Shown: in pieces, positions 1 to 48,500 of the stretch | Numbering within the stretch: position 1 is the first letter of the stretch | How the letters are laid out: every line of letters starts with the position of its first letter | From: Macrostomum lignano | Lineage: Eukaryota | Length of the DNA: 64,000 nucleotides | Reading direction: 5' to 3' | NCBI GenBank assembly: GCA_002269645.1 | Contig: NIVC01002012.1 | Location: 62,001-126,000 of the forward strand | Translations under genes and position numbers: made by a program | Notes under the pieces: generated by a model | What the model saw: the letters and a program-made list of their open reading frames with translations, nothing else | Told to the model about the DNA's origin: nothing | Database searches by the model: none

Positions 1-598
1 AAATTGTCGCTGGCAAACCTAAGCGGCCATTCTTCATCTATTTGAATTTAGCAACAGAAAAATCCTCAATTTAAAGCATTATCTGCAAAGTAAATTAAAA
101 ATCGTCAGAGAGCTCTGCTTGGCTTCCAAGCCTCAGCCCTGCCCTCCCTCCCCTCTCCATCTCTCCCCTCGTGTCTCAGCTGCCGCCCCTTCACCCCTGC
201 CCACTGACAATGCACTTGCTATGCCGAGCACGCAGCCACAGTCAGCTCTCATTGTTTAACTCAGCAGAGCTCGCAGCATCTCACTGCTCCTGCATCTCTC
301 ACCCCGCTGAGCAGAGCAGCTGCCGGACCCCCTGGCACCCAATCAGGCCTCAAACACAGCCGCTGGGTCAGAGAAGAGAATCGGCCTCAGTCCATTTAAA
401 CAAATTTCTCTGCACAGAGAGAGCTCAGAGATTTCAGTCCGTGACAGCGGGACTTTTGCTGCTGCTGCTGAGCTGGCAGGCAAATTCGCTTGAAGAAGAG
501 CAAAGCACTCAGTTTGAAGCCGTGTGGAACAGCTGCGGCAGACAGCAGATCGGCAGAGAAGCGCTGCTAGGAGAAACAGTGTAGCCAGGGCAACAGAG

Positions 599-15522: not shown

Positions 15523-18500
15523 TTAGAGCTTCATCTCCATGCCAATGTCAGGCAAGTCTGGGTCGCCTTCGGCGAGCACCTCCGGGTGGCGCAAACTAGG
15601 CTCGAACAGCTGACTGCCTCGCAGGTCAGGCTGAACTGTGGCCGGCTGCTCTGGCGCGGGCTGATCGGCTGGGTCGACTTCGCTGTCTTTGCTCAACTCA
15701 TAGGGCAGCATTGGCCGCTCTGTCTGGCGTGGCGGCTCCTGTGGTCCATCTGCCATCATCTGCGGCACCTTGATGATGTTGTTACGATGAACTAGCATTT
15801 CAGCTGGGCGTCTTCGGCGGGCTGTCGCTGGCTTGATCCAATACGCCACTTCTCCGACTTTCCTGATGACCTTGTACATACTCTTGTATGGCTGGTGGAA
15901 CTTGGGCAGCTCTCCCAGTTCGAGCTTCGGGTTGGCCAGGCAGACCAAGTCTCCAGGCTGCAGCTCCACAGGCTTCGGCCGGTTCTCGTAGTACTCCTCT
16001 CGGCGCTGGATCTCGGTCCTCAGCCGCTGTCGCACAATTCGTTCTGTCTCGGCCAGTCTGCGCTGATGTTTGGCAATGTACTCCGGGAGATCAGCTGATA
16101 ACATCTAGTTGGTCTAGGGTGTTATCGATCGGATACCGGTAGGGCACTCCGTAGATGACATAATGCGGCGAAAACCCGGTTGTACGATTGACTGCTGATC
16201 TTAAAGCTGTTAAAGCGGCTGGCAACATCTTGTCCCATTGCTGATGGTCTTCTAGGAGACAGGTGAGCACCTTCTTGATGTTCTTATTGCACGACTCAGC
16301 TTGTCCATTGGCCCATGGCGAATATGGCGGCGTCGTGGTCTGCCGGATGCCGTAAACTTCGCAGAAGTGCCGGAACTTGTGTCCTGTGAACTGTTTCCCT
16401 TGATCGGAGTGAATCCATGCCGGGATTCCGGTGATCGGAAACACTTGTTCCTGCAGGAGCGTTATAATGGTCTTGGCCCGCTGATTCTTCATGGCGAAGG
16501 CGAAGGGGTATTTCGACGTAATGTCGACATAGGTCAGGATGTACTTGTTGCCTCGGTCTGTCGGGTCTCCAGTGGGGCCCAGAATATCAATCGCACATCG
16601 CCCATAGATTTCACAGACCGGAGACGATTGTACATGCAACAGAATTCGTCGCCGTCCTTTGCTCTGAGTGCAGGTCTGGCAGGAAGCAACATAGTCGGAC
16701 ACTGCCTTGGCCAGGGCAGGTCGCCAGAACCTTTCGCGCACCTTCGCGATGGTGAGGTCTCGGCCCATGTGTCCACAGTAGGGTGAACCGTGGAGGTCGG
16801 CGAACACCGTGGCGTCGAGGCTCTTCGGCAGGACGATCCGCGCCGTTTCCTCCTCGCCAATATCGTCAAAATGAATTACCAGTAGTCCATCGTCTCGGAC
16901 TTCAAGCTGCTCATAGAACGCTAGTAGGTTTCGTTCGTCTCGCGTCATATTCAAACGCTGATTCAGCGGCAGCTTCGGCTGTTGGCTTTCCAAAAGATTG
17001 ATCATCATGGCGATGGCAGAGTCAGCACGCTGGTGAGTCTGGAGCTCCTCACGTGTGACTGGCCTCGGGATGTGATCAGTTAGATTCAATGTTGAACGTC
17101 GATTAGTCAAATTAGTCGGCGCGGCTTCGGCTGTGGCGGCATGGTTCGGGGTCTGGAGCTCCCTCCACACAATCGCTACTCTGGCCAGTTGCGGGGTCGT
17201 TGATGTGCCCGAAGGTCGATCCTCGTCGGTAGCTTTGGCGTCACTGTTGTTGGATTCAGATCGGTCAGCAGTTGATGATGAGTCAGCAGAGCTGTCCGCG
17301 TCGCTGCTGAATCTCACCTTCTTCTCAAACTTTGGGCAACGAGTGGGTTGGCAGCTGTCCTCTCTGGCTGCGCTATGGTCGCTGTCCATGTCGTCCCCAG
17401 CTAGTAGTCGGCGGCTTCCCGACGGGCAACATGTCGTGCTATTGAAACTGGTAGGCGACCTCTGCAAGTCATCGTAATGGCTGGCTGATGGCCTCGGCTT
17501 CGTTGCCGGCGGGTGCAGCTCTGTCAGCGGCTTGCTGTCGGCTGTCGGTGTTGCTGGCGGCGTAGCCTCGCCGTTGGACTCCTTCGGCTTAGTCGGCAGT
17601 TTCCATCGCTTACGGCGGGTCGACGGCTTCTTGCTCGGTGGAGGACTAGGGTGGCTGCTGTCGTAGACCTTCAGCACCACTGCGCCAGTTATCGCGGCTG
17701 GCTGCTTACTTTGGTCCCCTTCAGCTGCCTCTCGCTGAGCCTCCTCCAAGCATTTGGCGTCGTCCTCCGGCCGTCTTGAGAGACTGTTGGCGTTTTGATG
17801 CTGACTCGATTTACGATGCTGGATCTCGAACTCAAATTCACTTAGCCGCTATAGCCATCATCCAAAAATGCCTATTTGTTAAGTTCGTCGGAGAATCCAG
17901 GTCAACGCTGCATGGTCGGTTCGACAAATGAACTTCTTGGCCAGCAGGTAGAAGCGGAAATGTCGCATGCCATCTACGACTGCCAAGAGTTCTTGCTTAG
18001 TAATTGGATATCGGGCTTCAGCCGGTTTAAGTCGCCGGGAGAAATAGCCAATTGGGCGCTCGATCCCGTCAGCTTGGCGTTGGCTCAGGCAGGCTCCGAT
18101 TCTGGTCGCAGAAGCATCCGTGTCCAGGATAAACATTACTTCCGGATCCTCGCTGAACTGCGGATACGCGAGCACTGATGTCGAAATCATGGCTGCTTTG
18201 AGCAGATCGAATGCGTCTTGCTAGGCTTTTCCCCATAGACAATTGAAATTTCTAATCTTCTTTTCCTTGATTAAGTCGTGGAGCGGAGCTGCAAGTTCTG
18301 CATAGCCAGGTACAAATTTTGCATAGTAAGCGCACGTGCAGACAAAACTTTTAAGTTGTTGAGCTGTTCTTGGTCTTGGCCAGGTCTGAATAGCCTCGAT
18401 CTTCGCCGGATCGGTCTTGATGCCGTCCTTAGTAACTACATGTCCCAGATAGTTTAGACTTGCCTGAAATAAATGGCACTTCCTGCCTTTGAACTTTAAG

Positions 18501-20340
18501 TTGGCCTCTTGAATTCGCTTAAATACTTCCTCCATATGCTGTAGATGGTCATTAAATTTCTTAGAATAGATGATTATGTCATCCAGGTAGGCTATTGCAC
18601 CTTTGTAGGCGATCCCGTTGAGCACAGCATTTATGAGGCACATGAAGCTGGCTGGCGCCAAACTTAATCCCATAGGCATCACATTGTAGGCAAATTGTCC
18701 GCGGTGCAGCGTGGCAAAGGCCGTCAGATCTTGATCCTCTGGATGCAGTGGAATCTGATAGTAGCCGCTATTGAGGTCGAACGTGCTGAATAGCTAGCTT
18801 CCTTCGAGGCTGGCGAATGCTTCTTGAATATTCGGTATCAGGTACAGAAAGTACTCGCACTTTTGGTTCAGACTCCTGAAGTCTTGTACAATTCTTAGGC
18901 TGCCGTCCTTCGGGATGATCACCAGCGGGGTGTTGTAGCTGGAGAAGCTCGGTCGAATCACGCCTTTGGCAAGCAGATCGTCAAGCAGCTGGTCCACCTT
19001 GGGCAGCAGATGCGGCGGAATCCTTCGGGTCGGCAGATGTACAGGATCCTTGTCCTTCAACACAATGTTGTGGGTGACCAGGTGAGTTTGGCCGAGATCG
19101 TGTGGCCCCTGCGAGAAGATGGTCTTGTACTTCTTCAATAGCTCGATGACTTAGCGCGCTGGTCATTGGACAAGTCCTCGCCAATGTCGATCTCTTTGAT
19201 CCAAGCGTCAGGATCTTCGTCTTGAACTTGATTAACTGAAGCTTCTGGCTTCGGCAGCGGAAAGAATTGTAACTCGGGCAGTCTGATTGGTCTAGCAATC
19301 CCAACTAGGGCATTCGCTTGCACTTTGATGGAAGTAGTGCCTTGATTGATCATCTCAATGGCGCCTTCTCCATTGGCCATAGATATTAAGGCAGGCGTGG
19401 CGTCCAGTTGCTGCACATCTTCTTCACGCCGAGCTGGTTTTAGCGGCTTGATCACAGCAGGTGTGCCCTGGTTTTCTTCTTGTCCTTTTGCTAGTTTAAT
19501 CTTGATTCGGGCTGATGATAACGGCGGCACGGTTGTGCTCTCAGCCATGTAGATTCTGCACGTAGTAGCTTCGGTTCGCGTATAGCGCAGTGGTGCGGCA
19601 GTGCCATCATACATGCGCAACCTTGGGAATCACCCGGCCGTTTCTAATGGCAACACGCACATGTAAGTCGCTATTGGCTGAGAGCAGTCACGTGACTACT
19701 ATTCCGTCCAATAGCGACTTACATGTGTGTGTTGCCAATAGAAACGGCCGGGTGAATCCCTAGGTTGCGCCCAAGCATGAGTGCCATCCTTGAAAAACAG
19801 CATCCCGGCGGCGAGATCCAGTGATGTACTGTACTTCTCCAGGAACTCAAAGCCCAGGATGTTGTCATGAGATCCCTTCGCTAGGAGGAACTTGACTGTA
19901 GGCTCGAAACTTCCAATTTTAACTTTGATTGATAGTTGGCCTGCCATTTGAATAGGCTCTCCATTGTAGGTCACAATGCGTTGCAGGCAGGGCTCGATTT
20001 GGCCACGCAGGGTCGGGTCATTGGTACATAGTCGGTGCCAGGTGCTGAATCCTAGGACTTTGCACTTGGAGCCGGTGTCAAGCAGAAAAGCAAAATAACG
20101 GCCCTGTATCTCACCAGTTAGAAACGGATCCCTTCGGGGTCGCTTGGGTGCAGATTTATGTATAGGTGCAGTGGAGGCAGTCTCAGCAGTGGCCTGCTGA
20201 GCGACTAAAGTCCTCGGCGGGGACCTTAGTGCTGGCTCGGCTGCTGGATGGCGCTGCCCGCGTTGGCGCATCCAGCCGTCCCGTTTCCCGAGCTGCTGTT
20301 GCGCTGGGGCGTGGTGCTGGCCGACCACCGGTGCGGGCAC
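15523..20340 (-). pseudogene. Gypsy pol (protease-RT-RNase H-integrase), interrupted
   Basis: Protease LLDTGS; RT IAYLDDIII; RNase H FILDTDAS and YPITKQELLA; integrase HHCC zinc finger, AIDILGP, HSDQG and NGQAES. Several TAG/TAA/TGA stops and frameshifts (for example ~19140, ~16100). Confidence 0.93.
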
Positions 20341-21629
20341 TCATTGGCGCGGTGCTCGCGATTGCACCTGTAACACATAGCGCTCTGTCGCCACAGCTGA
20401 TAGGGCGGCGGGCGTGAACCCGACTGTTGCTGCCGCTGCGGCTGCTGCTGCTGCTGCTGTCGACATTGACCTCCTGCTGGCGGCATCCTTGGCGGCGGGT
20501 TGCTGCCATCTCGTGGTTGCTGAAGTCGATGGAACTGCTCGTGCTGCACAATCCGTGTGCCGGGTGTCTTGAATTGGGCACTCTCATCGGCGCTGCGGCG
20601 AGGAGTCGAGGGCACCAAACATCTGTTGCGTTGGCCCCAAGAGTCCTGCGGCTGGTGGCGAGCAGATTCCCAATGCTCCTGGGTGTCATTATTGCGCGAT
20701 CCCAGCGAGTGGAACTCTTGCAGCTCATTGCTCAAAGCTTCTAGTAGACGTCGCTGCTCTTGCAGTGTCTCAGTTTGCTGTTCCATCACTTCACGCAACC
20801 AATTCTCCTCGGGCCAAGATGACTTGTCGTGTTGCACTCCAGTTGGTGACTGACCATCGTCATCCTCGAGAACCCGGACATGTCTCGCTGCTGGCGGTGG
20901 TGCTACCCTCTGAGCCAGACTAGCTGCTGTCTCCAGGCGTAGCACAGCCCTTCTCGCTGCAGTCAGATTCTGCAGTTGCGCCAGGATTAGCTGTTCTCTG
21001 GCTGACTGGGCAATTTGCACTCCCACAGTGAACTGGTCCACTAGCTCGGCCTGCTTCTGAACCGGGGTGAAGTGTGGGAACGCTCTATCGGCCAGAGCAA
21101 TTAATCGATCGCCGTAGTCATCCACACTCTCATTCTTGCCTTGCTGGCGGCACCGGAATTGCTCACGGTACTCCAGCGTATCGGCCACGTGCGTGTAGCG
21201 CTCAGACAATCTCTGCTTGAATTCGCCAAATGTCAGATTGTCCGGTAGTTCCATCCTAATGACTGCGGGATAGGTTGTGGCGATGTCCAAATTCACTAGG
21301 ACTTCCGCCTTCTTACATCTGTCGTCCACAATCCCGTTGAGTTTGCAACGCTCCTCGAGAGCCTAGATCCAGACATCAAAGTCCTGGTTCGGGGTGTACC
21401 GCAGAATTTTGACCGGTTTCGGCGCCGGAGCTCGGTCAGGCTGTTGGGGCGGCTGATACACGTGGTGATGGTGCTGCGGCTGTCCCAAGTTGGCCTGCTC
21501 CAGTCACCGTCTCACCTCTTCGGTCACTGCTCGAATCATCTCATTGTAGGTCGGCCTAGTAGTTGAGTTGTCGGGGCCCGCGGCGTCGGCTGTCGAATCC
21601 GCGGCCGTTGAGTTAGTTGTCGAAGCCAT
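20226..21629 (-). pseudogene. Gypsy gag with two premature stops
   Basis: ATG at 21629, in-frame TGA at 21504..21506 and TAG near 21363, then the capsid-like region (YREQFRCRQQGKNESVDDY) and the zinc knuckle CYRCNREHRANEC. Confidence 0.88.
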
Positions 21630-25728: not shown

Positions 25729-26538
25729 TTGCTTTGCCTTTGTTGGCTTTAAAATTTTGGGTCATTTTCAGGTTTCGGGTATATATCAAATTTCAAGTTT
25801 TGGGACATTGGGTGGTAGCAAAAATCACTTTCGGCCATCTCTAATTTTATTAAAGTAAACCTAAGACTTTCTATATTAGTGAGTTTAGTGTAGGTGTAAA
25901 ATTTGTTGTCATTTGGTCATTTTGTCAATTTTGTATTTTAAAACTGTATACAAATATAATTAATAAAAATTGACAAATAATATTTGTTAAATAACTTTTT
26001 CAGATGGCACAAAACAATTATAGCAATAGATCAGAAGTGGATAAGTTGATAGCTGACCCAAATAGGTTTTATTGAAAGCTTCGTAAGATCTTGATTGTTG
26101 TTGATTTTAACAACATTTAATTAAATTTATTGTCTTAATTTTTTGACTTGTAAAACTTTTTTAGACTGAACAAGGTGTTAATAGCACTGGAGATTTTCTA
26201 CAAAACCAGCCTGAGTATGGGGTAATTCTTATTTTAATATATTTTCATTGTGTATTCTGCTTTACTTGATAATAAATAATGAAGCTAAATGCAACAGTTG
26301 CAGATCAATTATAAATTTACATATTGTTTATTTGTATTGCTAATATTCTTGAAAGTAAAAAAAAAATCTCTTTAAAAATGTACTCATTTTATACTCATTT
26401 TTATTCTAAAATTAGTTTGACAAGATGAATTTTTTTCGAATTTAAGTCCTTAATAATTTTTATATCAACATCAGTTTTAAATTAGTCAGACAATTGCAGT
26501 CTTACTAATAGCTCTTTATTTCATTATCCACTTTATAG

Positions 26539-29500
26539 GCCGAACAGCAGCAGCAACCATGGCCAAAGGTGAAAATCACAGTCAGTAACCAACCTGTATC
26601 ATCCTATCGCCATCGATCTGAAGGCGAGATTAATAACTTTATTAGTCAAGGCAGCACCAAGGCAGTTGGAAGTTTGCTGAAAGGTCGGAACGACAATGGT
26701 CAAGGTGATTTTATTAAGATTGAATTGGAATTGACTGATGGATATCAGCGCGAATTCGATGTTGATGGAGAGCTGATTGTGCTGCTGGTTGATACCAATG
26801 GCACTATCTTTGGCGAGCCGCCATTAAAAGTGCATCCTTGGAATTTGAAGGGCGACTACTGCTGCCCAACAGCAGGTGTCTATCGACAGAAAATCAAGCT
26901 GCCAAAAAGTGAAACTAGCATCCCTGTTTTGTAAGTCACGATATGGCCTTGTCTGTGCGTTCATCTTAATGTCTGTCTGTCCGTCTGCTTGCCTGCCTGT
27001 CTTTGTCTGTCCGTCTGCTTGCCTGCCTGTCTTTGTCTGTCCGTCTGCTTGCCTACCTGTCTTTGTCTGTCCGTCTGCTTGCCTACCTGTCTTTGTCTGT
27101 CCGTCTGCTTGCCTGCCTGTCTTTGTCTGTCCGTCTGCTTGCCTGCCTGTCTTTGTCTGTCCGTCTGCTTGCTTACCTGTCTTTGTCTGTCCGTCTGCTT
27201 GCTTACCTGTCTTTGTCTGTCCGTCTGCTTGCTTACCTGTCTTTGTCTGTCCGTCTGCTTGCTTACCTGTCTTTGTCTGTCCGTCTGCTTGCTTACCTGT
27301 CTTTGTCTGTCCGTCTGCTTGCCTGCCTGTCTTTGTCTGTCCGTCTGCTTGCTTGCCTGTCTTTGTCTGCCCGTCTGCTTGCTTACCTGTCTTTGTCTGT
27401 CCGTCTGCTTGCCTACCTGTCTTTGTCTGTCCGTCTGCTTGCTTACTTGTCTTTGTCTGTCCGTCTGCTTGCCTTACCTGTCTGTTTTGTTGTCCATCTG
27501 CTTGTGTCTGTCTGTCTATTTGAGTGTCTGTCTCTAATCTATCTGTACATTTTGTCAAAATCCTTTGTCTATTTCTTCGTCTCATCAACTGTTTAACGGT
27601 CATTCCATTTGTAAAATGTAAAATTTATTAACAGTATACATTTATAACATTATAACGCATGGTTTTAACATTTCAGATTCAATAAAATCGGGATTGTAAA
27701 GTGTAAAAACTGTGACGTTCTAAAAAGTGTCGATCAAAAGGCTAAAATGCTTAACGAACTGTTTAATTCATCTGAAGATTCTCAGTGTAACTCACGTAAT
27801 CTGCGCAGAATGTTTCGTAAGTTTTGCTTACTTTTTGTATAAGCTATACCATAGCAATTACTATTACACAGATACTGCAAATGTACTTTTAAATGTACCT
27901 TTCATCCATAGACAACCCGAATGACGAAAGTTCCGGTCCATTGTCCGTTGATCCTCTTAAAGAAGTCCAGCAAAGCGTGCGACTTCTGTTCGCCTTCGTT
28001 CCGGATGATATTCAAATGGTTCTGAACTCCTATGCCATTTCCGAACCAATTTTGTGTGAGTTTTGAACTAACTTTACTTGTCACATGAATTCTCTAGTTA
28101 ACAATTATTCAGATGGTCAGCCATTCTGTAGAGGGGAATTATTCAGATGGTCAGTGATTCTGCATAGGAATTATTCAGATGGTCAGTGATTCCACAGGAG
28201 AATTATTCAGATGGTCAGCCATTCTGTAAAGGGGAATTATTCAAATGATCAGTGATTCTGCAGAGGAGAATTATTCAGATGGTCAGCGATTGTGTAGAGG
28301 GGAATTATTCAGATGGTCAGTGATTCTGCATAGGAATTATTCAGATGGTCAGTGATTCCACAGGAGAATTATTCAGATGGTCAGCCATTCTGTAAAGGGG
28401 AATTATTCAAATGATCAGTGATTCTGCAGAGGAGAATTATTCAGATGGTCAGCGATTGTGTAGAGGGGAATTATTCAGATGGTTAGCGATTGTATAGAGG
28501 GGAATTATTCAGATGGTCAGCGATTGTGTAGAGGGGAATTATTCAGATAGTCAGCGATTCTGTAGAGGGGAATTATTCAGATGATCAGCGATTCTGCAGA
28601 GGAGAATTATTCAGATGGTCAGTGATTCTGTAGAGGGGAATTATTTAGATGGTCAGCGATTCCACAGGAGAATTATTCAGATGGTCAGCGATTGTATAGA
28701 GGGGAATTATTCAGATGGTCACCGGTTCTGTAGGGGAATTATTCAGATGTTCAGCGATTCCACAGGAGAATTATTCAGATGGTCAGCGATTGTATAGAGG
28801 GGAATTATTCAGATGGTCAGCGATTCTGTAAAGGGGAATTATTCAAATGATCAGTGATTCTGCATAGGAATTATTCAGATGGTCAGCGATTCCACAGGAG
28901 AATTATTCAGATAGTCAGCGATTGTATAGAGGGGAATTATTCAGATGGTCACCGGTTCTGTAGGGGAATTATTCAGATGGTCAGCGATTCTGTAGGGAAT
29001 TATTCAGATGGTCAGCGATTCTGTAGGGAATTATTCAGATGGTCAGCGATTCTGTGGGGGCAATTATTCAGATGCTCAGCGATTCTGTAGGGAATTATTC
29101 AGATGGTCAGTGATTGTCACCAAACCAATGGCATGACAAATGATACATTTACAACCCACAGGCCAATCAGGCAGTGACGGTGGCAAATCGTTTGGTGTCA
29201 AAGCATTCAATCCAGTTTGCGTCTATCTTAAGCGCGACTTGCAATATCCGATGACGTCAGACATCTGGGTGCAGCTCGAAGCTGATATTAGTTAGTTAAC
29301 TGATAAAAAAGGCTTATTTCGCTTAAAATTATTGAAAGTACTATATAATTCATATTTATATTCTACTTATTTCAGAAAAGAAATCGGAGACGATATCTGC
29401 TCAACTACTGGTACCATGCACCAGCGCTGCAACAGCTAATCCATTGTCTGTGGAAGTATCTATTCCAGTGGAAGTACAGCGTGTAAGGCCACCAGTAATC

Positions 29501-29821
29501 TAATCCATGATCGCCTCTATATATGTATCTAATCCCATAGGAATCACCCCCATCTTGCGTATGTAGCCTATTTTGACAGATTTCAGTTTAAACTTCCTCG
29601 CATTATTGTAGAATCTTTTGAAGTTGCAACTAACCAAATTGGAAGTCCAAGACACCATAGCGAATCTCCCCGAGGAGCAGTTCATGGCAAAGCTCTGCTT
29701 GACCAAAGAGAGCAATTCTTCTGGAAGATTAACTTCCAGCGTGGATGTACGGTTTATCTACCTGAATCAGCTAAAAACACCTTCTTTGCACAATCGAGCG
29801 AAAAGGCCTAGACAGGATTAG
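26539..29821 (+). CDS. Divergent Rel-homology-domain (NF-kB/Rel-like) protein, at least 373 aa; 5' exon(s) not resolved
   Basis: join(26539..26930,27677..27816,27912..28055,29162..29290,29376..29482,29612..29821) = 1122 nt, all GT-AG and phase-consistent. Motifs appear in RHD order: KITVSNQP, YRHRSEGE, GSLLKG, HPWNLKGDYC, FNKIGIVKCK, SVRLLF, ISEPIL, then an IPT-like region ending VRFIYL and basic RAKRPR. Confidence 0.82.
26971..27475. repeat. 30-bp minisatellite in a Rel-like gene intron
   Basis: GTCTGTCCGTCTGCTTGCCT(G/A)CCTGTCTTT, about 17 units. Confidence 0.95.
28103..29115. repeat. 31-34-bp minisatellite in a Rel-like gene intron
   Basis: AATTATTCAGATGGTCAGCGATTCTGTAGAGGGG, about 30 units. 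Confidence 0.95.
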
Positions 29822-30426
29822 CCTGCCTCTGTTGACCTGTTAGTCTACATGTATCCCCTACGATCACATCTGTATTAATAGCATCATCAAATTAATGTTA
29901 CTATAAATTAAATATATACTAAGAAATTCTTTCTATTCTTTTTTTTTCATATGTACATCAAAATTGGATTCAGCCTGGATATTTTTTCATATCAAACAAT
30001 ATTTTATTTTTTTACAAAACAATCATGCAGAAAGGCCATAAAAAGTAACACCGAGATTACAATACTTTTAACAAAAGATTAAACAGGAAGGCGGTGTAAT
30101 TGCCCTTCTGAATAATGTTAAAAAAGTATTAAGCAAGATGATTTTAATAAACAAGCAAATTATGATGATACAAATGATACAAATTATACCGAAAAAAAAA
30201 CAGAAAGGCGATGTCATTGCCTCTCTGACATTTTCCCGAACCGAAACTTGGCCGAACAGCTGGCCAGCATCAGATGAAGCTGGCGTCCAGATCAGCCACC
30301 GGTCTGTTGCGCCGGTCCCACAAGCTTGGTGGAGCGACAATCGCCGACGAACTGCCGCTGGTCCAAATTGGATCCATTGGCAGTTGAATAATGATTGTCG
30401 ACTGGATATCTTTCCATTCGACTCCA

Positions 30427-33400
30427 TTACTGTTGCCATGGAGACAGATAGTGACAAAAAAGCGTTCGACGTTTGTAAATTCCTGATGGTTGTCGGTGCA
30501 TTTTGTCAGTTTTAGGCGAAGTCGGTGCTAAAATAGATTTAAAGATAAAGACAACTTTATTTTAGTTTATTTGTCTTTTATTTCCTTCACTTAATTTTGG
30601 GTTAGAAATTAAAAAAAATTACCCCATTGAGTTCGAAATTGACCAGAGATACTTTATCCGAGTTGGTTAGCGTGACGCCAGTGAGATTGTCGTGACCTAA
30701 AACGTTAACAAGTTTTTACGAGCATATTCTTTTTAATAACCAATGAGTGAATGACATTGACATACTGCAATCTGCAAAAAAGTTTTGGCAACGGGGCTTG
30801 TCCATGCCCAGCCAGACGCTCTGTCAACTGTAGAAAGGCCCAAAAGTCATGGGGGCCGGGGCTTCAAGTCAGGACTAGGCCGAAGGCAGGCTTGAGCAAA
30901 GATCATATATACCCAAGATGGCCGCTTATGTGGCCATAGAAGCTAATGTCAAAAATTTGCATCTCGCGACAGCGCGAAAATAAACTACTGAACTCAATTT
31001 CGTCAGTAGTCTCTACAGTGAATTCATGTGAATTCATCATTATTATTGAGGTAAGGTAGCACGCTTTAGCAGGCAGAGAAATACAAAAGTTAAAATCAAC
31101 ATAGATTATAATAAATTCTTTCTTCCGACGCGTTTCGGTCCAACAATGACCATCTTCAGGGTCTGGTGTATTTTTAACTCACACAACAACTTTATAAGTG
31201 AACAAATGTTAACTGTACAGTACAAAGGGCATGTCATGGGCAGAATTTTCCAAAAAATGTTAAGCATAGATTGCAAGTACATTGTTCAGACTAGTGCCTT
31301 TACTTAGAATACCTTCTGTGAGTAGCTTATTATTTAATTCATGAGAAGTTTTATTCAATTCTCAAAAAATAGCGTCTATGTCTTTAAGCTACTGAACTCA
31401 AAATGGAAACAACCCGTCGGCTTTTTTCGCACAAGTGACGAAAAACAGCGGTCGCGCTTTTCCTATTGCCGCAATACAAAGTGGCCTATCTAGGGAATAT
31501 AAGATCTATGGGCTTGAGCTAGTCTACGAAGTGGTTAAAGCCAAGCAAGATGTTTTACCAATTTTTTTAACCATTTGATGGGGCTTGGTCACCGACAATC
31601 TGTGTGCTCCAGTACGAATTTTCACAGAGTTGTGATGGCATAAAATAGGTAAAAAACGCACATTTTCAGAACTGAACTGAGGTACGGAATGCCATAAAAA
31701 TCGCACGTGTTCTCAATGCTTGCCGAATTGGTACGAGCGTACTAGCATGTGCTCCGGCTTATGCTTAAAATAGAATTGGCGTCATAAATTGGTTCCATGT
31801 TGGCTAAGGCAGAGGGAAAGGGATTTAGTGCAGGCTATTTTACTATACTCAACAGCTCAAAACGAACACTCACCAGTAATTATAGGCCGACTAAAATGTA
31901 CCAGTACTTCAACGATATCCCCATTTTTAAGTGTAATATCGTATGGTTGAGCATCCGATACAGTTGGAGGCTTCGGCAGGTCTACAATCGGACACAATTC
32001 GATTCATATTGTCAATAGTAACTCAAAACTTCAGGTTAAGAAACACCTTATAGCTACGATTTACTTTAAACACTTACAGACCAGGGCTTCTGATGACAAC
32101 TCAGCCCAATGCCACTTGTCAGTATTGCCATTGCTGTGTAGCTGGTAACGACACAGCAGTTTCAGTTGTAGGGAGTATGGATTTGAACTTGGCTTTGGCT
32201 TGATTGAACTTTGCAGTCCTGTATTTGTGGATAGAAAAATAGTAAAGCATAGTAAAGCATGATTGTTGAGTAGTGAAGACCAATTGTAAGTACAAATACT
32301 TGGTTGGAAAATACGTTAACAATATTATTGATTACAATATGTCTAATAATATACTCGTAGTCGTACAAGCTATATTTACTGCCCTACTAAAAATAAACTT
32401 TATTTATATAGCTGACTCTGATCGACTCAATTTATAGCTAAGGCACTTTATTAATTTTTGTCTCAACTCTGCACTCCCTCCTTCTCACTGCAGCCAAAAT
32501 TAGGGCCATAGAAACAAATTGCATTATGAACAGTTAACAGTAAGTATAAGATAAACCCCCCCCCCCCAGATTTGTTTCTTTGGCGTATCGCATAGAATGG
32601 CTGAGGATCGCCGAGGCCTAGAAGCAATGGATGAAGGAATAGAAAGGATTGCTCGTCTGAAACAGAGTCTATGGTCAAGGCTTCCTAAAAACTGGGATAT
32701 CCCCCCCATGAATTTTACTGGCTGCTCTAATTTAATAATAGTCCCAGTTCTTACTGGCTGAAGCTTGTATGCGGGAGAAATTCCAAAGTCACGATTAACG
32801 CACATACTATGCTGTAGTATATTAAACACAGACAACCTTTTGTTTTAATGCTAATTTCTTTCCCTTAAGCCGTCGTGGCCCAGAGGAAAAAAACAGTTAT
32901 AGATGTCCGTATAAAGAATTCTATTCCTTCGTCCATTCAACAAATAGTTTTGTTTTTGTTCTGTGTAATTCCTTCATCCATGCTAGAAGCCCAGTCCGAA
33001 GCCATTCTTTACGCCATAGACAGCAAATCTGGGGGGGGGGGTTATTATACTTGAATCTAAGTGTGGCTCAGCCAGGCGCTGTTCTGCCTTCTGCACTAGC
33101 TGATTTCACGGCCCGGCCGTGAAATATATCCTTGGCCCCGCCATTAAATAAAAAGCGTTATACATACCATAGACACTGGACTGAGCTACACTGGGGTTTA
33201 ATTAAGACGAGAACCACGGGCGTGGTGTGAGTTGTGTTACATGAGGGTGAGATCTAAGAAAAGATGACCAACTGGTTTTGGGTGTGAAAACTTTAAGTGA
33301 GTGTATGATTGTGCTGTTTTGCTTGTCTTTGCCTTGATATCTTACAGCCAGAGCAGGAATGACAAGCATGGCCCAGTGTAGGCCTGATTATATGAGTAGA

Positions 33401-36400
33401 TGTAGAAACCAGGCAAAGAAAGAGGCAGTGAAACAGAAAATGCAGACTGCTGTCATGCCACTTACAGAAACTTGACATTAAGAAATGAATTGAACAGTAA
33501 ACTGTTTGCCAACACCTGCTTTTGTGCACTGCAATTCTAAAGATGTTAACTGACAAATCGTCGAGTGTAAGGTGGTTGTAGCTTAGTGGTCAGAGCGTCG
33601 GACTCGTGACTTGAAAGTCGGGGGTTCGAATCCCGAACCCACTCGGAACAATTTGTGCCCTTGAGCAAGACACTTAACTCTGCATTGCTTCAGTTCATCC
33701 CCAAGCCGTAAATGGGTTCCAGCATTAGCTGGGGTAACTGAGGGTGTGTGTGGCGACCCCCAGTCCTTGACTGAACAGCCGTACGCAGCCTTCAGATGCG
33801 CCGCGCAATAGCTGCGGCTGAGCTGTCGGTTGCACATCTGCCCATTGGGGCAGGTGTAATCAATTATTATATTTATTATAATGGCCCACGAGCATGCAAA
33901 AGCACCGTCACTCGTCGTGAAATCTTGATTACCAGAGGGTTGACGCCATGTGACAGCGAGAGTCAGTAGGGTGTTTGCTGTTTCTGATAGTCTATTTAAG
34001 TTTTTATGCCAATTGATGTTTAAGATAAGTAGCAATCTGAAAATTAGAAGACAAAGAAGGCAATAAAATCAATGAAGAACAAGTTATACAGACAGATTCA
34101 TTTGAAAGATTTTTTAATGGAATTCTGAAAACTTGTGCCCCAATAGGCAGATGTGCAACCGACAGCTCAGTCGCAGCTATTGTGCGGGCGCATCTGAAGG
34201 CTGCGTACGGCTGTTTAGTCCAAGGATTGGGGGTCGCCACACATACCCTCAATTACCCCAGCTAGCACCCATTTTACAGCTGGGAGAACTGAAGCAATGT
34301 GGAGCTGTGTCTTGCTCAAGGACACAATTATTCAAAGTGGGTCAGGAATCAAAGAGATGTAACCTAGTCACTGGCGAAGAAAGTTAATATTTCTATCATT
34401 TTACTTTAGTATGGATGTATTTTGTTCTTTTTTCAAGGTCTATAGCAATAATTTTTGTTTTGTGAAAATTTTAAGCTTATAAAATATAAGTATTACTGGT
34501 GCTTCAGCTTCAAAAAGCTATATGCTGGTCAGGAAGAATTAAGTGGGTCCTATTATTAATAAAGTTTTAAATGACATATGATACAAAATAAACTTACCAG
34601 GATAGCCAAGCTGGGTTATAAACTCTTGATATTTCAAGTGGCTTGTCTCATCTCGTTCTCCAATAGTTACAAGAAAGATTTCATTAATTTCATTACTAAA
34701 ATATTAAAAAAAAATAATTAAACTTCAATTGAAAAAATCTAACAACATAGTTTAAATAGTCCAAAAATTATCTTACCATTTCATATCAGTTGGAGTATAG
34801 TCAAAGACAATCATGCCAACATGATTGTGGTATAGCTTACTATCAAGATAGCATTCAGAAATTCCAGAATTAGTTTTATCAAACTGATGAATAATTAGAA
34901 AGCATTCAACTTTTTTAACAGTTCCAGTAAATCTAATACAGATATGTATTTTCAGTTTTTCAGATGGGTCTTGTGAATCATAGATATTCTTGGATGTCTT
35001 GATTGTGCCCTAAAATAAAAGTTAAAGCAAATAAATAATAAAACAAGTCTTAGAAATATTTGTCAATGAAAAATAAATGGTTGAAACTAATGGACTTACA
35101 AGAATAGAAGGGCTTTGATTAGCTCTTTGTATTTCTTGGAGCATTTCCATTTTAGCAGACACTAGCTGTTTACCTGAAAAACAAAAAGGGTTATTAATAT
35201 TAGGATAGAAAAATGTATTTACAATAGAAAGTATAACATACATATTAATAGTACCACAATTATTCTTGGACTAAATATTATATGGACTATAATGGCTCAA
35301 GTTACAAGGGTTCTAATTATTTGGGTGAACTGAAAGTTTAGTCTATTGTAAACAAAAGATTGGTTGTCAATTTAGGTTTAGTAGCTCAACTTGTTAGTCT
35401 TTGGCAATTGGGTTGGGACCCTAAATGTTTCAATCAAAAGTAATTCTTAAACAATGAATGAGGTAGCCAGGAGCTAAGAGAGGCAATGGCAAGAATGGTA
35501 AGGAGGCAAGCTTTTTGCTTGGTTTAAGATATAAGGTAGAGATTGAGAAATTGTGCTTCTATCAAAAGTACCATTAATTTGCCTACCAGAATGGCACTTA
35601 GGTCATAAGAATGGTAGAACATAGAAATAATAAAACTACCATGCTACCAGTGCTTGTTGCTAACTTACTAAACCATTACTAAGCCAAGACACTGCTTTAT
35701 ATTATTGAGCAATATCAATAGTTCAGATCATGCTAGGTGCATGCCTAAATGAAAATTGAACAATTACAAATGCACGCCTATGCATCCAAAAGTTTTGAGT
35801 GCACACTAGGGATTTTGACCCCAGGGAATGCTTCCTGGGGCCCTAGGGAGCTTGTTGGAGAATAATCCCTAGGGAATTGGACCAGGGACCCCATCCCCAG
35901 GGAGAAAAATATAAAAAAATTTTGTTTGTAACCTAATTTTTGTCATTTAAATAAGAAAATGATTCATAGAAAGCTGATTGAAACTCTATCTATGCTCTTT
36001 TATTGCAAAATTGCTTATTTCAATGTATTATTTCAAGCATAACACATAAACACAATAGTATCATATATATATTTCCAAGAGTTTCTATAGCACAAAAAGT
36101 TTTTATACCCTTACTTGTAACATTTCTAATGTTAGTACCTATATCAAAAGTGATTGCCTGGCCTACCTAGCATTAATTATAAGTTTTGCATAATCAATTT
36201 TTTATATTGTAACAATTAAACATTTGAACATTATTTTGATGTCTGCCATTGGCATTATCTATGTTCTAATAGTTTTATTAAATAGGTTTTTCTAGTTTGT
36301 TTGTATGAAATTGAGCTAACTGAATAAAACTATATTTATACCCTAAAAAGCTTAATGATTTAGATTAGGGAGTCTAGTGGGATTTTAATTTTTTTTAATT

Positions 36401-39876: not shown

Positions 39877-40554
39877 TTACAAAGCCAAAGTATCTTTCAG
39901 AATCTTCTTAACGGCGCCGCCCATGGTAGCTTGCACTGGATCGTCGTTACAAGTGGAGTAGTGTACCCGGAAATGATGCGGCGTCAACAGTGGACATTGC
40001 ATGTCCAAGATCTGATCGAAATCGCCAGTTCTAGCCAGTTTAGGCTTATAGGTGTCCGGATTCACCATAGTGTCGTTAATATAAAATATCGCATCTGTGA
40101 CGGCTTGAGTGAGCTTGTCGCGATGAGCAGATCTGGCAGTTTCGGTGTCAAACGAGGTCAAATTAACGTGAACAATCCAGATCTCCCAGGGCACCGGATC
40201 GCTAGCGAAGACGCCCCATTTGGCTCGCTTCTGCTCGTGAAATTCCAGCGCAACACTGCCGGTGCCTCGCTCGGAACTCTGACCAGACCGGAGCTGCTTG
40301 ACAAACGCCTGAATTGGTTGATTGACTTTGTTAACAACTTCATCGCAGGATACTCGAGTGTAAGTGACTTCGATTGATTCGCAGTCCTCGTCAGTCAGTC
40401 CAGCGGCTCCCACAGTCCAGGTGTTGCCGCCCTCTTTAACAGAGATTTTAGCGTAGCAACGATGCAGCAGAACTGTGTGGAATACCGAACGGACCACTTC
40501 TTCAACTTCCATGCCCTCCAAGTCGAAGGAGAACGTGTGCTTTTGAACGTTCAT
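39877..40554 (-). CDS. ATG101: Autophagy-related protein 101 (HORMA domain), single coding exon, 225 aa
   Basis: Motifs FHTVLLHR, EVTYTRV, LEFHEQKRAKW, PWEIW and the C-terminal KDTLAL match ATG101. Confidence 0.96.
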   Translation of the reverse strand: MNVQKHTFSFDLEGMEVEEVVRSVFHTVLLHRCYAKISVKEGGNTWTVGAAGLTDEDCESIEVTYTRVSCDEVVNKVNQPIQAFVKQLRSGQSSERGTGSVALEFHEQKRAKWGVFASDPVPWEIWIVHVNLTSFDTETARSAHRDKLTQAVTDAIFYINDTMVNPDTYKPKLARTGDFDQILDMQCPLLTPHHFRVHYSTCNDDPVQATMGGAVKKILKDTLAL

Positions 40555-40696: not shown

Positions 40697-42200
40697 AATG
40701 AGAACAGATTCTCAATCTCCCGATGAGAACAGATCCTCGATCTCCCCATGAGAACAGATCCTCAATCTCCCGATGAGAACAGATCCTCAATCTCCCCAAG
40801 AGAACAGATCCTCAACTCTCCCATGAGAACAGATCCTCAACTCTCCCATGAGAACAGATCCTCAATTCTCCCATGAAAACAGATCAACAATCTCCCTATG
40901 AGAACAGATCCTCAACTCTCCCATGAGAACAGATCCTCAAACTCCCCATAAAAACAGATTCTCAATTCTCCCATGAGAACAGATCCTCAACTCTCCCCAA
41001 GAGAACAGATCCTCAACTCTCCCATGAGAACAGATCCTCAACTCTCCCATGAGAACAGATCCTCAATCTCCCCAAGAGAACAGATCCTCAATCTCCCCAA
41101 GAGAACAGATCCTCAATCTCCCCATGAGAACAGATCCTCAATCTCCCCAAGAGAACAGATCCTCAATCTCCCCATGACAACAGATCCTCAATCTCCCCAT
41201 GAGAACAGATCCTCAATCTCCCCAAGAGAACAGATCCTCAATCTCCCCATGAGAACAGATCCTCAATCTCCCCAAGAGAACAGATCCTCAACTCTCCCAT
41301 GAGAACAGATCCTCAATTCACCCATCAGAACAGATCCTCAATCTCCCCATGAGAACAGATCCTCAATTCACCCATGAGAACAGATCCTCAATCTCTCCAT
41401 CAGAACAGATCCTCAATCTCCCCATGAGAACAGATCCTCAATCTCTCCATCAGAACAGATTCTCAATTCTTCCATGAGAACAGATCCTCAATCTCCCCAT
41501 GAGAACAGATCCTCAATCTCCCCATGAGAACAGATTCTCAATCCCTCCATGAGAACAGATCCTCAATTTACCTATGAGAACAAATCCTCAATTCACCTAT
41601 GAGAACAGATCCTCAATTCACCCATGAGAACAGATCCTCAATTCACCCATGAGAACAGATCCTCAATTCACCCATGAGAACAAATCCTCAATTCACCTAT
41701 GAGAACAAATCCTCAATTCACCTATGAGAACAGATCCTTAATTCCATCGTGAGAACACATCCTTAATTCCCTCATGAGAACAGATCCTCAATTCACCTAT
41801 GAGAACAGATCCTTAATTCCATCGTGAGAACACATCCTTAATTCCCTCATGAGAACAAATCCTCAATTCACCTATGAGAACAAATCCTCAATTCACCTAT
41901 GAGAACAAATCCTCAATTCACCTATGAGAACAAATCCTCAATTCACCCATGAGAACAGATCCTCAATTCACCCATCAGAACAGATCCTCAATTCACCCAT
42001 CAGAACAGATCCTGAATTCACCCATGAGAACAGATCCTCAATTCACCCATCAGAACAGATCCTCAATTCACCCATCAGAACAGATCCTCAATTCACCCAT
42101 GAGAACAGATCCTCAACTCTCCCATGAGAACAGATCCTCAATTCACCTATGAGAACAGATCCTTAATTCCATCGTGAGAACACATCCTTAATTCCCTCAT
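40697..42200. repeat. 25-bp minisatellite between NAT10 and ATG101
   Basis: ATGAGAACAGATCCTCAATCTCCCC, about 60 units; the variant changes gradually to ...ATTCACC(C/T). Confidence 0.95.
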
Positions 42201-42513
42201 GAGAACAGATCCTTAGTTTCTCCCAAGATGCCAAAAACTTTTCTGAGAAATACATATTCAAGCTGCAATAGAACTAAAACACCGGAACTAAACCACAGAC
42301 CCTAAAATGCTAAATTTCAGTTTAAAACAAAAGCAAAACAGCATTGGTTTTTTATCCACAAACAACAAAAAAGTAGCCGAGAGAAATGCTGCAGACAGAT
42401 GATGAAGCAATCAAACAAAGCATAAAATGCCATATATTTACTAGCTGGCTACTTTCAGTAAAGTTGTCAATGTACTTTTTAATTTCTAATCAATTTGATG
42501 AAAACAATTTTAT

Positions 42514-45500: not shown

Positions 45501-48500
45501 GGGTACAACGTTGGGTTCATGTTACGCGCGATCGAGCAATCAGTATCAGTCATTAGAGTCAATGATCAGTCCTTGCTGCTGTTCCGCCAGCTGTCAGATG
45601 TCCAGAGCCTTTCGCCGGTCGCCCTCTTCGTAGCGTTTCGGCGTCTCCTTGGCCTGTCGGGGGTGCGGCCTGTTGGCGAGAGGGACGTCCTGGTTGCCGG
45701 TTGGCTCGGGCGGGCCGGTTGGTTCATCCGGCCGGCTGTCCTGTCCGCTGTCGCGTTCTCCGGGGTCACCCGGCCACTCGTCGGCTGCCTGGGAGACTCG
45801 CTTGACGTGGCTGGCGTGCCTGGAGCACCTCTGGCCGGCCCGTTGGAGCTGCAGGGTGTTGCCGCGGATTTCTGTCACGGTCCATGGCGAGGCCTCGAAG
45901 AAGGGGTCGGTCTTGCTGCGGTTGGTGAGCCGGCGGAGTACGAGGTCGCCTACGGTGATCTGGTGGTCGGTGGCGCCCCTCTTGCTGTCGGCGAAGGCCT
46001 TCATCCGCTCCTTCGCCCTGGAGTCGTGGCCGCGGACGGTCTGTCGCCTGGCGTCAACCGGCCGGGAGTGGCGCAAGCTGGGGATCGTGTCGTTGAGCTG
46101 TCGGCCGAATAGCAGGTCGGCTGGGCCATGCCGGTTGCTGCGTGCGGTGTTCGCCGGTATGCAGCCAGGTAGTCGTCCAGTGCCGCCTGCCAGTCGCTGC
46201 CTTCCAGAATCGCCGCTCTGATTGCCTTATTGAGGCCTCGGTTGCATCGCTCTACGAGTCCGTTGGCTTGGGGATGCAGCGGCGTAGTCCGATGGTGGTG
46301 GACGCCCTGGCTGCGCAGGAAGGCGTTGAATTCTGCGGACGAGAATGGCGGGCCGTTGTCGGTGGTGATCTTGACTGGCTGGCCGAACGTGCTGAATTAC
46401 TGGCGGAGGGTTCGGATGACCGGAGCTGCCGCTGTCGACCCCGACATCGTCTGTACCAGTGGGAAACGTGAAAAATAGTCGGTGCACACCAGCAGCATGT
46501 GGCCTCTGATCGGTCCCAGGAAGTCTAGGCCCAGCTCTAGCCACAGCCCCTGCGGCAGCTCAGTCGGCTGAAGTGGGGCTGCCTTCAATTCGGCTGTGTT
46601 CGTGCAGGCCTTGCAGCTGAGGCAGGAGTTTACGAAGTTCTCGACGGAGGCCCGCATTGAGGGCCACCAGACCTTTGTCTGGAGGCGTGCCAATGTTTTC
46701 TGGACACCCAGGTGGCCTTGGTGCGCCAGCTGCAGGCAGCGGTAGCGCAGAATGGCAGGAACGACGATTTGGTGCCCTTTGAGCAGGAGTCCGTCGTGTT
46801 GTGAGAGCTCGTGCCGCAGGCCGTGCAGGCTGCGCGTGTCGTGGCTATCGAGTTGCCACCGACGGGACCGGAGCCCGGATACGGCGGCTTGGATCGCCTT
46901 GTCGCCTGCGGCGGCAACCTTGATCGTTTCGAGGCTGATGCTGTTCGGTGCTGCTGCCTGTGCTGTCATTGCGATGTAAGCCGTGTCGAGATCCTCACCC
47001 TGGTTGTTCGGCGGTGTTGGACGTGGCTGATGGCTCAGGACATCTGCCGGGTTGTCTGCGCCCGGCTGGTAGGTGACTTCGAAGTGGAGATCCTGCAGCC
47101 GAAGTGCCATGCGCTCGATCCGTGGCGGGGGCCGCGAGCCGGGGCTGAGCAGGCTGACCAGCGGCTTGTGGTCGGTGATGACCTTGAACTTTGGGCAGCC
47201 GCTAAGGTAGTGGTGGAACTTGAGGCACCCGAATTTGACGGCCAGCGCCTCCCTCTCTGTTTGCGAGTAGCGCTGCTCGGTGTCACTGAGGCTGCGGCTG
47301 GCGTAGGCGATTGGCCTGGTGAGGCCGCCAGGTTGCACCTGGGCGAGGATCGCCCCGAGGCCGGTCGGGCTGGCGTCGACGATCAGCCTGGTCTCGCAGT
47401 TCTTGTTGAAGAAGGCAAGCGTGGTGCTGTGAGCGATCGACTGCTTGATTGTCTGAAAGGCTGAGGCTTGCTGTGGACCCCACGACCATTTCACGTTCTT
47501 CTTGGTCAGCTCTCGAAGTGGCCTCGCTTTGTCGGCGAGGTTTGGGATGAAGCGGGCTACGAATGTGACGAGTCCGAGAAAGGACCGCACCTCCGTTGCA
47601 TTTTCTGGTCGCTTGAAGTTGGCCACAGCTTCCAGCCTTTCCTCGGTCGGTTGGATTCCGGCCGCCGAGAGGCGCATGGCCAGGAAGTCGGCCTGCTGGG
47701 TTGCAATGCGGCATTTGCGGGGGTTCAGAGTCACGTTGTGTTGACGCAGCCTGACAAGGCAGTTGCGCAGCCTCTCGTTGTGCTCCTTTATGGTGCTGGC
47801 GAAGATAATGATATCGTCATGGACCCACCGCACGCCTCTCAAACCGCTCAGGATAGATGTCATGACGCGCTGTAGGATTTCAGATGCTGAGGTAAATCCC
47901 ATGCAAAGGCGCTTGAGGCGGAGCAGGCCCAGAGGCGTTGAGAAAGTGAGCAGCTGCCGGGACTCCTCGCTGACCTCGATCTGGTGGAAGGCCTTGGCAA
48001 CGTCTAGTTCGGAGAAATAGGTGGAGCCGGCCATCTCGTCGGTGACTTCTTCGAATGTCGGTATTGGCTGCTTTTCTGGAATGACGTACTTATTGACGTC
48101 CCTCAGGTCCTGCGTGATGCGGATTTCGCCTGGCGAGGCCTTTGGAACGACCACCATGCGTGAACTCCAAGCGCTGGGCCCCGTCACTCGCTCCAGGATG
48201 CCGGCTGCTAGCTGGCCCTTCAGCTCCTTTTCCACGGCGGTTCGAAGATGCACTGGAACTCGAGACGGAGGGTGGCAGACTGGCACCGCTTCTTCTTTCA
48301 GCTGGATGCTGACTGAGACGCCCTTGATGCAGCCGATTCCTTGAAACCTGTCGCTGAACTCCTTCATGATCGATGACAGTCGCAAGTCTTGCGGAAGGTG
48401 CAGGTCGTTAACCGTTGGTGTCAGTCCGGCGGTGAGAGCTGTCTCGGCCTGCGGTCCGACCCTCAGCATCCCCATCTGCGTGCTTGTCTCGCGGCCTAGG

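Follow-up and report, generated by a model that had tools for sequence, protein, structure and literature searches.

A divergent multi-copy gene of the flatworm Macrostomum lignano with a probable Rel homology-related core

Introduction

NF-kB has been stated to be lost from parasitic flatworms and helminths (PMC4484250), and a 2024 survey did not find p50/p105 in Platyhelminthes and does not include the phylum in its c-Rel list (PMC11432056). A 2026 study of the planarian Schmidtea mediterranea describes seven divergent, long-branch Rel homology domain (RHD) genes together with a well conserved NFAT5; knockdown of the most Relish-like of these RHD genes was lethal, an effect unrelated to the transgene-silencing phenotype (PMC13563047). 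Here, we analyse an RHD-like gene on contig NIVC01002012.1 of the Macrostomum lignano assembly GCA_002269645.1. The gene lies in a stretch of 64,000 nucleotides (positions 62,001 to 126,000 of the forward strand of the contig) that we refer to as the window and whose first letter is position 1 in all window coordinates below. A first-pass annotation of the window, made from the letters alone, had proposed a hidden, highly divergent NF-kB/Rel-like gene and had argued that it would matter if the host were a flatworm, Rel/NF-kB being generally reported missing from planarians and parasitic flatworms. The host is indeed a flatworm, and this view is in print.

Class II Rel proteins (Drosophila Dorsal and Dif, vertebrate RelA and c-Rel) gave the best pairwise and profile similarity to the M. 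lignano protein. Both have HPxxLxG, FxxxGIxxxKxxDV, SVRLxF and SEPI in matching order and are without ankyrin repeats, and the M. lignano region closes with a basic cluster, at the place that the nuclear localisation signal occupies in Rel proteins. In contrast to this shared order, identity to the class II proteins is just ~20% over the alignable part, the M. lignano recognition loop is not conserved and is followed by an 11-residue insertion and by further insertions, the dimerisation domain is undetectable, and there is no C-terminal transactivation region.

Among class I NF-kB proteins (p105/p100/Relish), p50 carries SVVRLMFTAFLPD, which the M. lignano SVRLLFAFVPD resembles, but the overall Smith-Waterman alignment to p50 was no better than that of shuffles (z 0.2), and the M. 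lignano protein has neither ankyrin repeats nor a glycine-rich region and ends right after the basic cluster. NFAT and NFAT5 (TonEBP) are of the same superfamily fold type, whereas the NFAT5 RHD showed no significant similarity to the M. lignano protein (z 1.4) and its alignment was not collinear. The seven Schmidtea RHD genes (for example SMEST009320002.1; PMC13563047), which we compared by description only, come from the same phylum, have long branches and show low similarity to immune NF-kB. If their proteins are within the collections that we searched, they share no detectable similarity with the M. lignano protein.

Results

Gene model and sister copies

A public protein search for the gene returned only M. 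lignano entries, of which three are used throughout:

PAA81993.1 (P0001), BOX15_Mlig027372g2: 432 aa, 96% identity to the window model
PAA61631.1 (P0003), BOX15_Mlig017427g1: 219 aa, 100% identity to the C-terminal 59% of the model; the public model of the window locus itself
PAA93313.1 (P0005), Mlig017427g4: 409 aa, partial, 97% identity to P0001

We read the region 25800-30200 and spliced the six-exon model (26539-29821) directly, which gave a frame of 1122 nt, that is, 373 codons and a TAG, with no internal stop. All introns of this model are GT..AG, and each acceptor is pyrimidine-rich. The first-pass join of six exons in phase was therefore reproduced. Its remark that the open reading frame (ORF) track shows only two disconnected pieces also held at the 60-aa default cutoff of the ORF list, where the only right-frame ORFs are 26569-26934 (121 aa) and 29618-29821 (67 aa), corresponding to the first and the last of the six exons. 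Two further 5′ exons, suspected near 26004 and at 26165..26221, proved to be real when P0001 was aligned to the window by tblastn. The coding exons and the motifs that they carry are as follows:

26004 to 26082, plus strand: coding exon 1, from tblastn with P0001 (residues 1-22, 100% identity) and frame analysis
26165 to 26221, plus strand: coding exon 2 (TEQGVNSTGDFLQNQPEYG), from tblastn with P0001; phase 0 at both ends
26539 to 26930, plus strand: coding exon 3, the first exon of the first-pass model, with the N-terminal part of the RHD-like region; its junction is the same in P0001 and P0005
26563 to 26595, 26605 to 26625 and 26833 to 26853, plus strand: exon 3 motifs PKVKITVSNQP, YRHRSEG and HPWNLKG, respectively
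26815 to 27797, plus strand: RHD-similar stretch, residues 93-171 of the 373-aa model, split by the intron 26931-27676
27677 to 27816, plus strand: coding exon 4, with FNKIGIVKCKNCDV at 27678-27719, a predicted helical stretch and the first in-frame ATG (27747)
27912 to 28055, plus strand: coding exon 5, with SVRLLFAF at 27974-27997 and ISEPIL at 28037-28054
29162 to 29290, plus strand: coding exon 6, start of the C-terminal half, without a detectable family match
29376 to 29482, plus strand: coding exon 7, from direct splicing
29612 to 29821, plus strand: coding exon 8, with VRFIYL at 29747-29764, the basic KRPR at 29801-29812 and the stop TAG at 29819-29821

A candidate ATTAAA poly(A) signal is found at 29907. 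The five junctions of the six-exon model (SIPVL/FNKIG, RRMF/HNPND, EPILC/QSGS, EADI/KKKS and EVQR/NLLK, with the slash at the splice point) are identical in the public models P0001 and P0005. Because the M. lignano annotation was derived from a genome-guided RNA-seq transcriptome (PMC5730564), these junctions have transcript support at the level of the family; for individual copies this support is limited by the ambiguity of read mapping among near-identical sequences. We conclude that the gene is real, that the six-exon join is no chance construct, and that the gene is transcribed and multi-copy.

The gene was hidden only in part. The window copy is public solely as P0003, a truncated protein of 219 aa labelled hypothetical, whereas UniRef already lists its 96%-identical sister P0001 as 'RHD domain-containing protein' (A0A267G7I1). 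Three older models (P0002, P0004 and P0006) join an internal donor at ~26875 (GCAG/GTGTCT) to 27912 and thereby skip 65 aa, including FNKIGIVKCK; this shorter form is either an alternative isoform that keeps the frame or an artefact of gene prediction. In UniRef, these models bear the unrelated automatic names 'Integrin_alpha2' or 'Cadherin' domain-containing.

Besides the window copy, we compared the sister locus L001 and a third copy, L003, on NIVC01000031.1; tblastn with P0001 found no second gene copy within the 64-kb window. The paralogues form a small, very young multi-copy M. lignano family of at least three loci, 1-3% apart in the sequence compared, with proteins of ~418-432 aa.

Rel homology signal in the core

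The best and only notable Pfam match of the protein was RHD_DNA_bind (PF00554). The window protein matched this profile with an E-value of 5.5e-4 and 20.4 bits (residues 93-171 on profile positions 60-137 of 169), P0001 with an E-value of 1.4e-5 and 25.6 bits, and the central fragment alone with an E-value of 2.4e-4, all three falling short of the curated 27-bit cutoff. The matching part is a core of ~80 residues (HPWNLKG...FNKIGIVKCKNCDV).

We also built our own RHD hidden Markov model (HMM) from p65 and Dorsal proteins (via the bait alignment) and from p50 and NFAT5 baits. It scored 19.6-23.6 bits on three M. lignano proteins (19.6 on that of the window), compared to a maximum of 6.2 among 2000 shuffles, and aligned PPLKVHPWNLKG..AGVY....FNKIGIVKCKNCDVLKSVDQKAKMLNELF onto kpyrPHPHeLVGK..GVc....FanLGIqCVkKkDveealkareeirvdpF. 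Profile-profile alignment with hhalign gave an E-value of 2.6e-5 across P0001 153-298, including SVRLLF on sVRLcF, and split tests located the signal in P0001 153-285 with P between 2e-5 and 5e-5, a level that none of 60 shuffles reached. The SVRLLF motif was also aligned by Smith-Waterman against p50, and AISEPIL occupies the position collinear with VvSePIyD, with modest support (13 of 3000 shuffles were equal). The motif order of the core N-domain (HPHxLVGK, FxNLGIxCVKK, VRLCF, SxPI(Y/F)D) is therefore found in the M. lignano protein as HPWNLKG, FNKIGIVKCKNCDV, SVRLLFAF and ISEPIL.

Taken with the profile results, this order indicates that the core is very probably homologous to the N-terminal, DNA-binding module of the RHD. 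Smith-Waterman z-scores were 6.9 for Dorsal, 4.6 for RelA, 1.4 for NFAT5 and 0.2 for p50. Because the values for Dorsal and RelA stand against 1.4 for NFAT5, the affinity of the core is, by alignment score, Rel/Dorsal/RelA-like rather than NFAT/NFAT5-like.

Head, C-terminal half and fold

All eight motif strings that the first-pass annotation had set beside RelA are present in the protein in the order that it gave, but they differ in support. HPWNLKG and FNKIGIVKCK lie in the significant stretch, ISEPIL has modest support and SVRLLF is aligned, whereas VSNQP, YRHRSEGE, VGSLLKG and FIYL...AKRPR scored no better than shuffles. The profile searches that it had suggested likewise gave a divided answer, with an RHD_DNA_bind match below the curated Pfam gathering cutoff of 27 bits and no match to RHD_dimer/IPT.

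In the head, MAFFT and Smith-Waterman put PKVKIT..NQP on the Dorsal PYVKIT.EQP. The recognition loop RFRYxCEG aligned to (S)YRHRSEG, which retains only the second Arg, Glu and Gly and has His in place of Tyr and Ser in place of Cys; the loop Glu is Asp in P0001 and P0005. The M. lignano protein does not contain an R-x-R-Y-x-C-E-G loop followed by SAGSIPG, and the placement of the SAGSIPG counterpart is ambiguous, falling on either SQGST or VGSLLKG.

For the C-terminal half, local hhalign gave a P of 0.26 and the global runs were not above shuffles. A sub-HMM of the dimer core produced no alignment, and a sub-HMM of the FxYxP...RKRxK tail gave nothing above shuffles. The protein is closed by RAKRPRQD, 12 residues after FIYL, compared to 11 residues between FQYL and KRKR in RelA. 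Read by eye, the hydrophobic patterns of exon 6 and the C-terminal half appear to alternate. The size and pattern of this half, which would suit an immunoglobulin-like sandwich, and the spacing of KRPR are a resemblance and not evidence. A Pfam scan of the protein found no ankyrin repeats or other domains.

AlphaFold2 and an exhaustive phmmer search were run on P0001 as a 96%-identical stand-in for the window model. A Foldseek search of the AlphaFold2 model built from an alignment with Rel proteins listed NF-kB p52 first among PDB structures, a match that we rejected given its E-values of 0.8-1.0 and template modelling scores of 0.18-0.24; the Rel input also makes it circular. A word-seeded search at E-values up to 10 returned only M. 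lignano proteins, and phmmer of the 373-aa model against PDB sequences gave no match at E-values up to 10.

The 5′ end and divergence between copies

In the window copy, the exon 1 run at 26067-26070 is TTTT, whereas both sister loci have TTT (L001, 10064-10066; L003, 3037-3039). As assembled, the ATG frame of the window copy comprises 23 codons and then meets a TGA at 26073-26075. The frame that leads into the remainder of the gene is interrupted by stops at 26047-26052 and lacks an ATG upstream of 27747, where its first in-frame ATG lies and the public 219-aa model starts. Because the extra T cuts off the ATG frame, the public model of the locus (PAA61631.1) has just 219 aa, and the full protein is not makeable from the ATG of the window copy as assembled. 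With one T fewer, the predicted product is 418 aa long and reads NRFIESF as in P0005. The extra T is either a true mutation that disables a redundant duplicate or a homopolymer miscalled in the assembly.

The ATG at 26004 is immediately preceded by tttttcag, a possible spliced-leader acceptor; trans-splicing has been reported for 38.8% of M. lignano genes (PMC5730564). At L003 (2969-2973, compared with 25999-26003 of the window), ATG replaces the CAG acceptor ahead of the start codon, and this loss may explain why the public model of that copy is 'partial'. Exon 2 of L001 carries an extra 45 nt in frame.

Between the window copy and L001, the exons are 1.3% diverged and the short introns ~1.5%. 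The codon differences consist of 13 non-synonymous and 2 synonymous changes; all non-synonymous ones fall within residues 1-228, and the two proteins do not differ over the final 145 residues. This 13:2 pattern is not different from neutrality, and because the copies are so young (~1.3-1.5% diverged), the ratio of non-synonymous to synonymous divergence (dN/dS) is without power. Such young copies are in keeping with the M. lignano assembly, which contains 180 Mb of duplicate blocks with an identity of at least 95% (PMC5730564). The second intron measures 3395 nt in L001 (10263-13657) and 317 nt in the window (26222-26538).

Minisatellites and surroundings of the gene

Two introns of the gene contain minisatellites:

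26974 to 27504, no strand: intronic minisatellite, 17.6 copies of a 30-bp unit, with spurious long ORFs on both strands
28103 to 29115, no strand: intronic minisatellite, ~31 copies of a 34-bp unit

The intron that bears the 34-bp minisatellite is 1106 nt long in the window (28056-29161) and 450 nt long in L001 (15141-15590), so the array is expanded in the window copy. Long minisatellites are unusually dense elsewhere in the window (40698-42213, 50555-54232, 56893-58133, 60494-62399 and others); their units measure 21-46 bp and are repeated up to 84 times. Such density is in line with the 15% of simple and tandem repeats reported for the M. lignano genome.

The two annotated neighbours directly downstream, 30240-30515 (plus strand) and 30270-35156 (minus strand), encode 91 aa and 322 aa, respectively, without a Pfam match, and the arrangement is kept beside the sister copies. 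Some 25 kb upstream of the RHD-like gene, at 524-1801 (plus strand), an ankyrin-repeat ORF (Ank_2, E 2e-23) runs uninterrupted for 425 aa and contains a 210-bp tandem repeat. We considered it as a candidate IkB and rejected it, its best PDB matches being NompC, ankyrins and TRPA1, with nothing specific to IkB.

Other coding regions of the window are the following:

6323 to 7870, minus strand: intact-looking 515-aa ORF of a piggyBac-type transposase (DDE_Tnp_1_7, E 1e-77)
15523 to 21329, minus strand: long terminal repeat (LTR) retrotransposon coding region with integrase and aspartic protease ORFs
39877 to 40554, minus strand: single-exon ORF, homologue of the ATG101 autophagy protein (E 2e-31)
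46397 to 49507, minus strand: LTR-retrotransposon ORF of 1036 aa with protease, reverse transcriptase, RNase H and integrase

Both LTR-retrotransposon regions coincide with G+C-rich blocks of the window.

Discussion

The results partly bear out the proposal of a divergent NF-kB/Rel-like gene. A core of ~80 residues related to RHD_DNA_bind is supported by Pfam, by our own HMM and by hhalign, but the rest of the resemblance is without significant signal. We consider it probable that the gene belongs to a young M. lignano family with an RHD-derived core whose products act as Rel-type nuclear DNA-binding dimers, and that the window copy, as assembled, is frameshifted. Because the loop and the dimerisation domain that define Rel/NF-kB proteins are not recognised by sequence, we do not file the gene as a bona fide member of that family.

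As a Rel-type factor, the protein would be nuclear, dimeric and sequence-specific in its DNA binding. Its N-terminal ~60 residues, which we take to be unstructured, would be followed by an RHD-like module with lineage-specific insertions, in which the predicted helical stretch would sit where Rel proteins have their helical insert. The C-terminal ~150 residues, with their alternating hydrophobic patterns, would form an immunoglobulin-like dimerisation module, and the terminal KRPR would serve as a nuclear import signal. Because there are neither ankyrin repeats nor a tail past the basic cluster, such a protein would need a partner for activation or would act as a repressor or competitor. The loop keeps only one of the two Arg residues and the Glu, which makes a classical kappaB site an improbable target if the protein binds DNA; the altered loop probably means either a non-kappaB specificity or a role as partner or competitor.

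Several observations weigh against this interpretation. The PF00554 scores of both the window protein and P0001 are under the 27-bit cutoff, yet they are the top of the library, and the significant signal covers just ~80 of ~420 residues. The head (P0001 aa 61-152), tested on its own with RHD sub-profiles, was indistinguishable from shuffles. In the C-terminal half, Pfam gave no match to RHD_dimer (PF16179) or IPT/TIG at E-values up to 10, and the putative dimerisation module and import signal are deduced solely from position, size and composition. The AlphaFold2 models had a mean predicted local distance difference test (pLDDT) score of 30.0 from the single sequence and of 36.4 when P0001, P0005 and 20 p65/Dorsal proteins were supplied as a 22-row alignment. 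Exhaustive phmmer with P0001 against 1.84 billion cluster representatives found no relatives outside M. lignano, so conservation is unusable as evidence. The copies show no sign of purifying selection, exon divergence being equal to intron divergence, although the statistical power of this comparison is low. Finally, all three copies are defective or odd at the 5′ end, each in a different way.

The frameshift raises the question of whether the window copy works at all. It could be a decaying duplicate, a pseudogene or 5′-truncated gene that makes a 219-aa C-terminal fragment or nothing, while other copies carry the function, a possibility that is compatible with the Rel-type interpretation. 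The frame offers no alternative in-frame ATG before 27747, and the public model of the locus is precisely the 219-aa product. The 13:2 ratio of non-synonymous to synonymous changes, the equality of exon and intron divergence and the high redundancy of the assembly, with its duplicate blocks of 180 Mb at an identity of at least 95% (PMC5730564), point the same way. However, the remainder of the 373-codon frame is intact, the change adds just one base to a run of T in a PacBio/Canu-based assembly in which REAPR called 64% of bases error-free (PMC5730564), and the copies are too young for dN/dS to weigh. We regard decay of this copy as quite possible, although we lean against it.

The altered loop bears on a second alternative, in which the protein is derived from an RHD but would no longer be a kappaB-type DNA binder and might instead act as a dominant-negative partner, a cytoplasmic adaptor or a factor of new specificity. 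The loop reads YRHRSEG in place of RFRYxCEG, with Glu changed to Asp in two copies, and the KKRD/KKKD that follows the GIQCV motif is KNCD in the M. lignano protein. The lack of an activation tail would also suit such a role, as would the distribution of copy differences, most of which are non-synonymous changes within the N-terminal 228 residues, with no residue altered in the last 145. Against this, the loop of NFAT proteins also differs (RAHYETEG), and NFAT proteins still bind DNA. We consider this alternative unlikely.

That the protein is a lineage-specific orphan whose RHD resemblance arose by chance or convergence would agree with the scores under the Pfam gathering score, the lack of detectable relatives outside M. 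lignano, the low confidence of both AlphaFold2 models (pLDDT 30 and 36) and the Integrin_alpha2 and Cadherin names of the older models, which show the weakness of such automatic signals, but is very unlikely given library-wide E-values of 1e-5 to 5e-4, the failure of all 2000 shuffles to come within 13 bits of the observed score, an hhalign P of 2e-5, and a match that falls on the two most conserved RHD N-domain motifs at the right spacing with a third motif collinear after them.

We thus retain the Rel-type interpretation, with the RHD-derived core as its supported part. The gene adds one more highly divergent representative to a known kind and is partly labelled in databases already, and its novelty is modest: a sister copy already bears an RHD name and planarian RHD genes have been published, whereas our literature search, which included the locus tags, turned up no publication on the M. 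lignano genes. In practical terms, the public model of the locus was shown to be truncated, with the cause pinpointed to one extra T in exon 1, and the ~80-residue core that has support was set apart from those portions of the 'NF-kB-like' reading that have none.

A broader proposal, which we consider rather unlikely at present, is that Rel/NF-kB was not lost at the base of the flatworms but diverged past recognition. The Macrostomum family would then be orthologous to at least some of the planarian RHD genes and would encode a signal-regulated nuclear factor, acting for example in responses to stress, wounds or microbes; both its DNA specificity and its regulators would be new. If this is true, Rel-type regulation persists in a phylum reported to be without Toll-like receptors and several upstream NF-kB components. 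Recovery of a complete RHD by deep alignment or structure, together with planarian orthology and a signal-dependent role, would raise the interest of the family considerably. M. lignano branches early among the flatworms and is amenable to transgenesis, and a Rel-type gene in this species would make it possible to ask directly whether any Rel-like signalling has survived in the phylum and to what it is wired.

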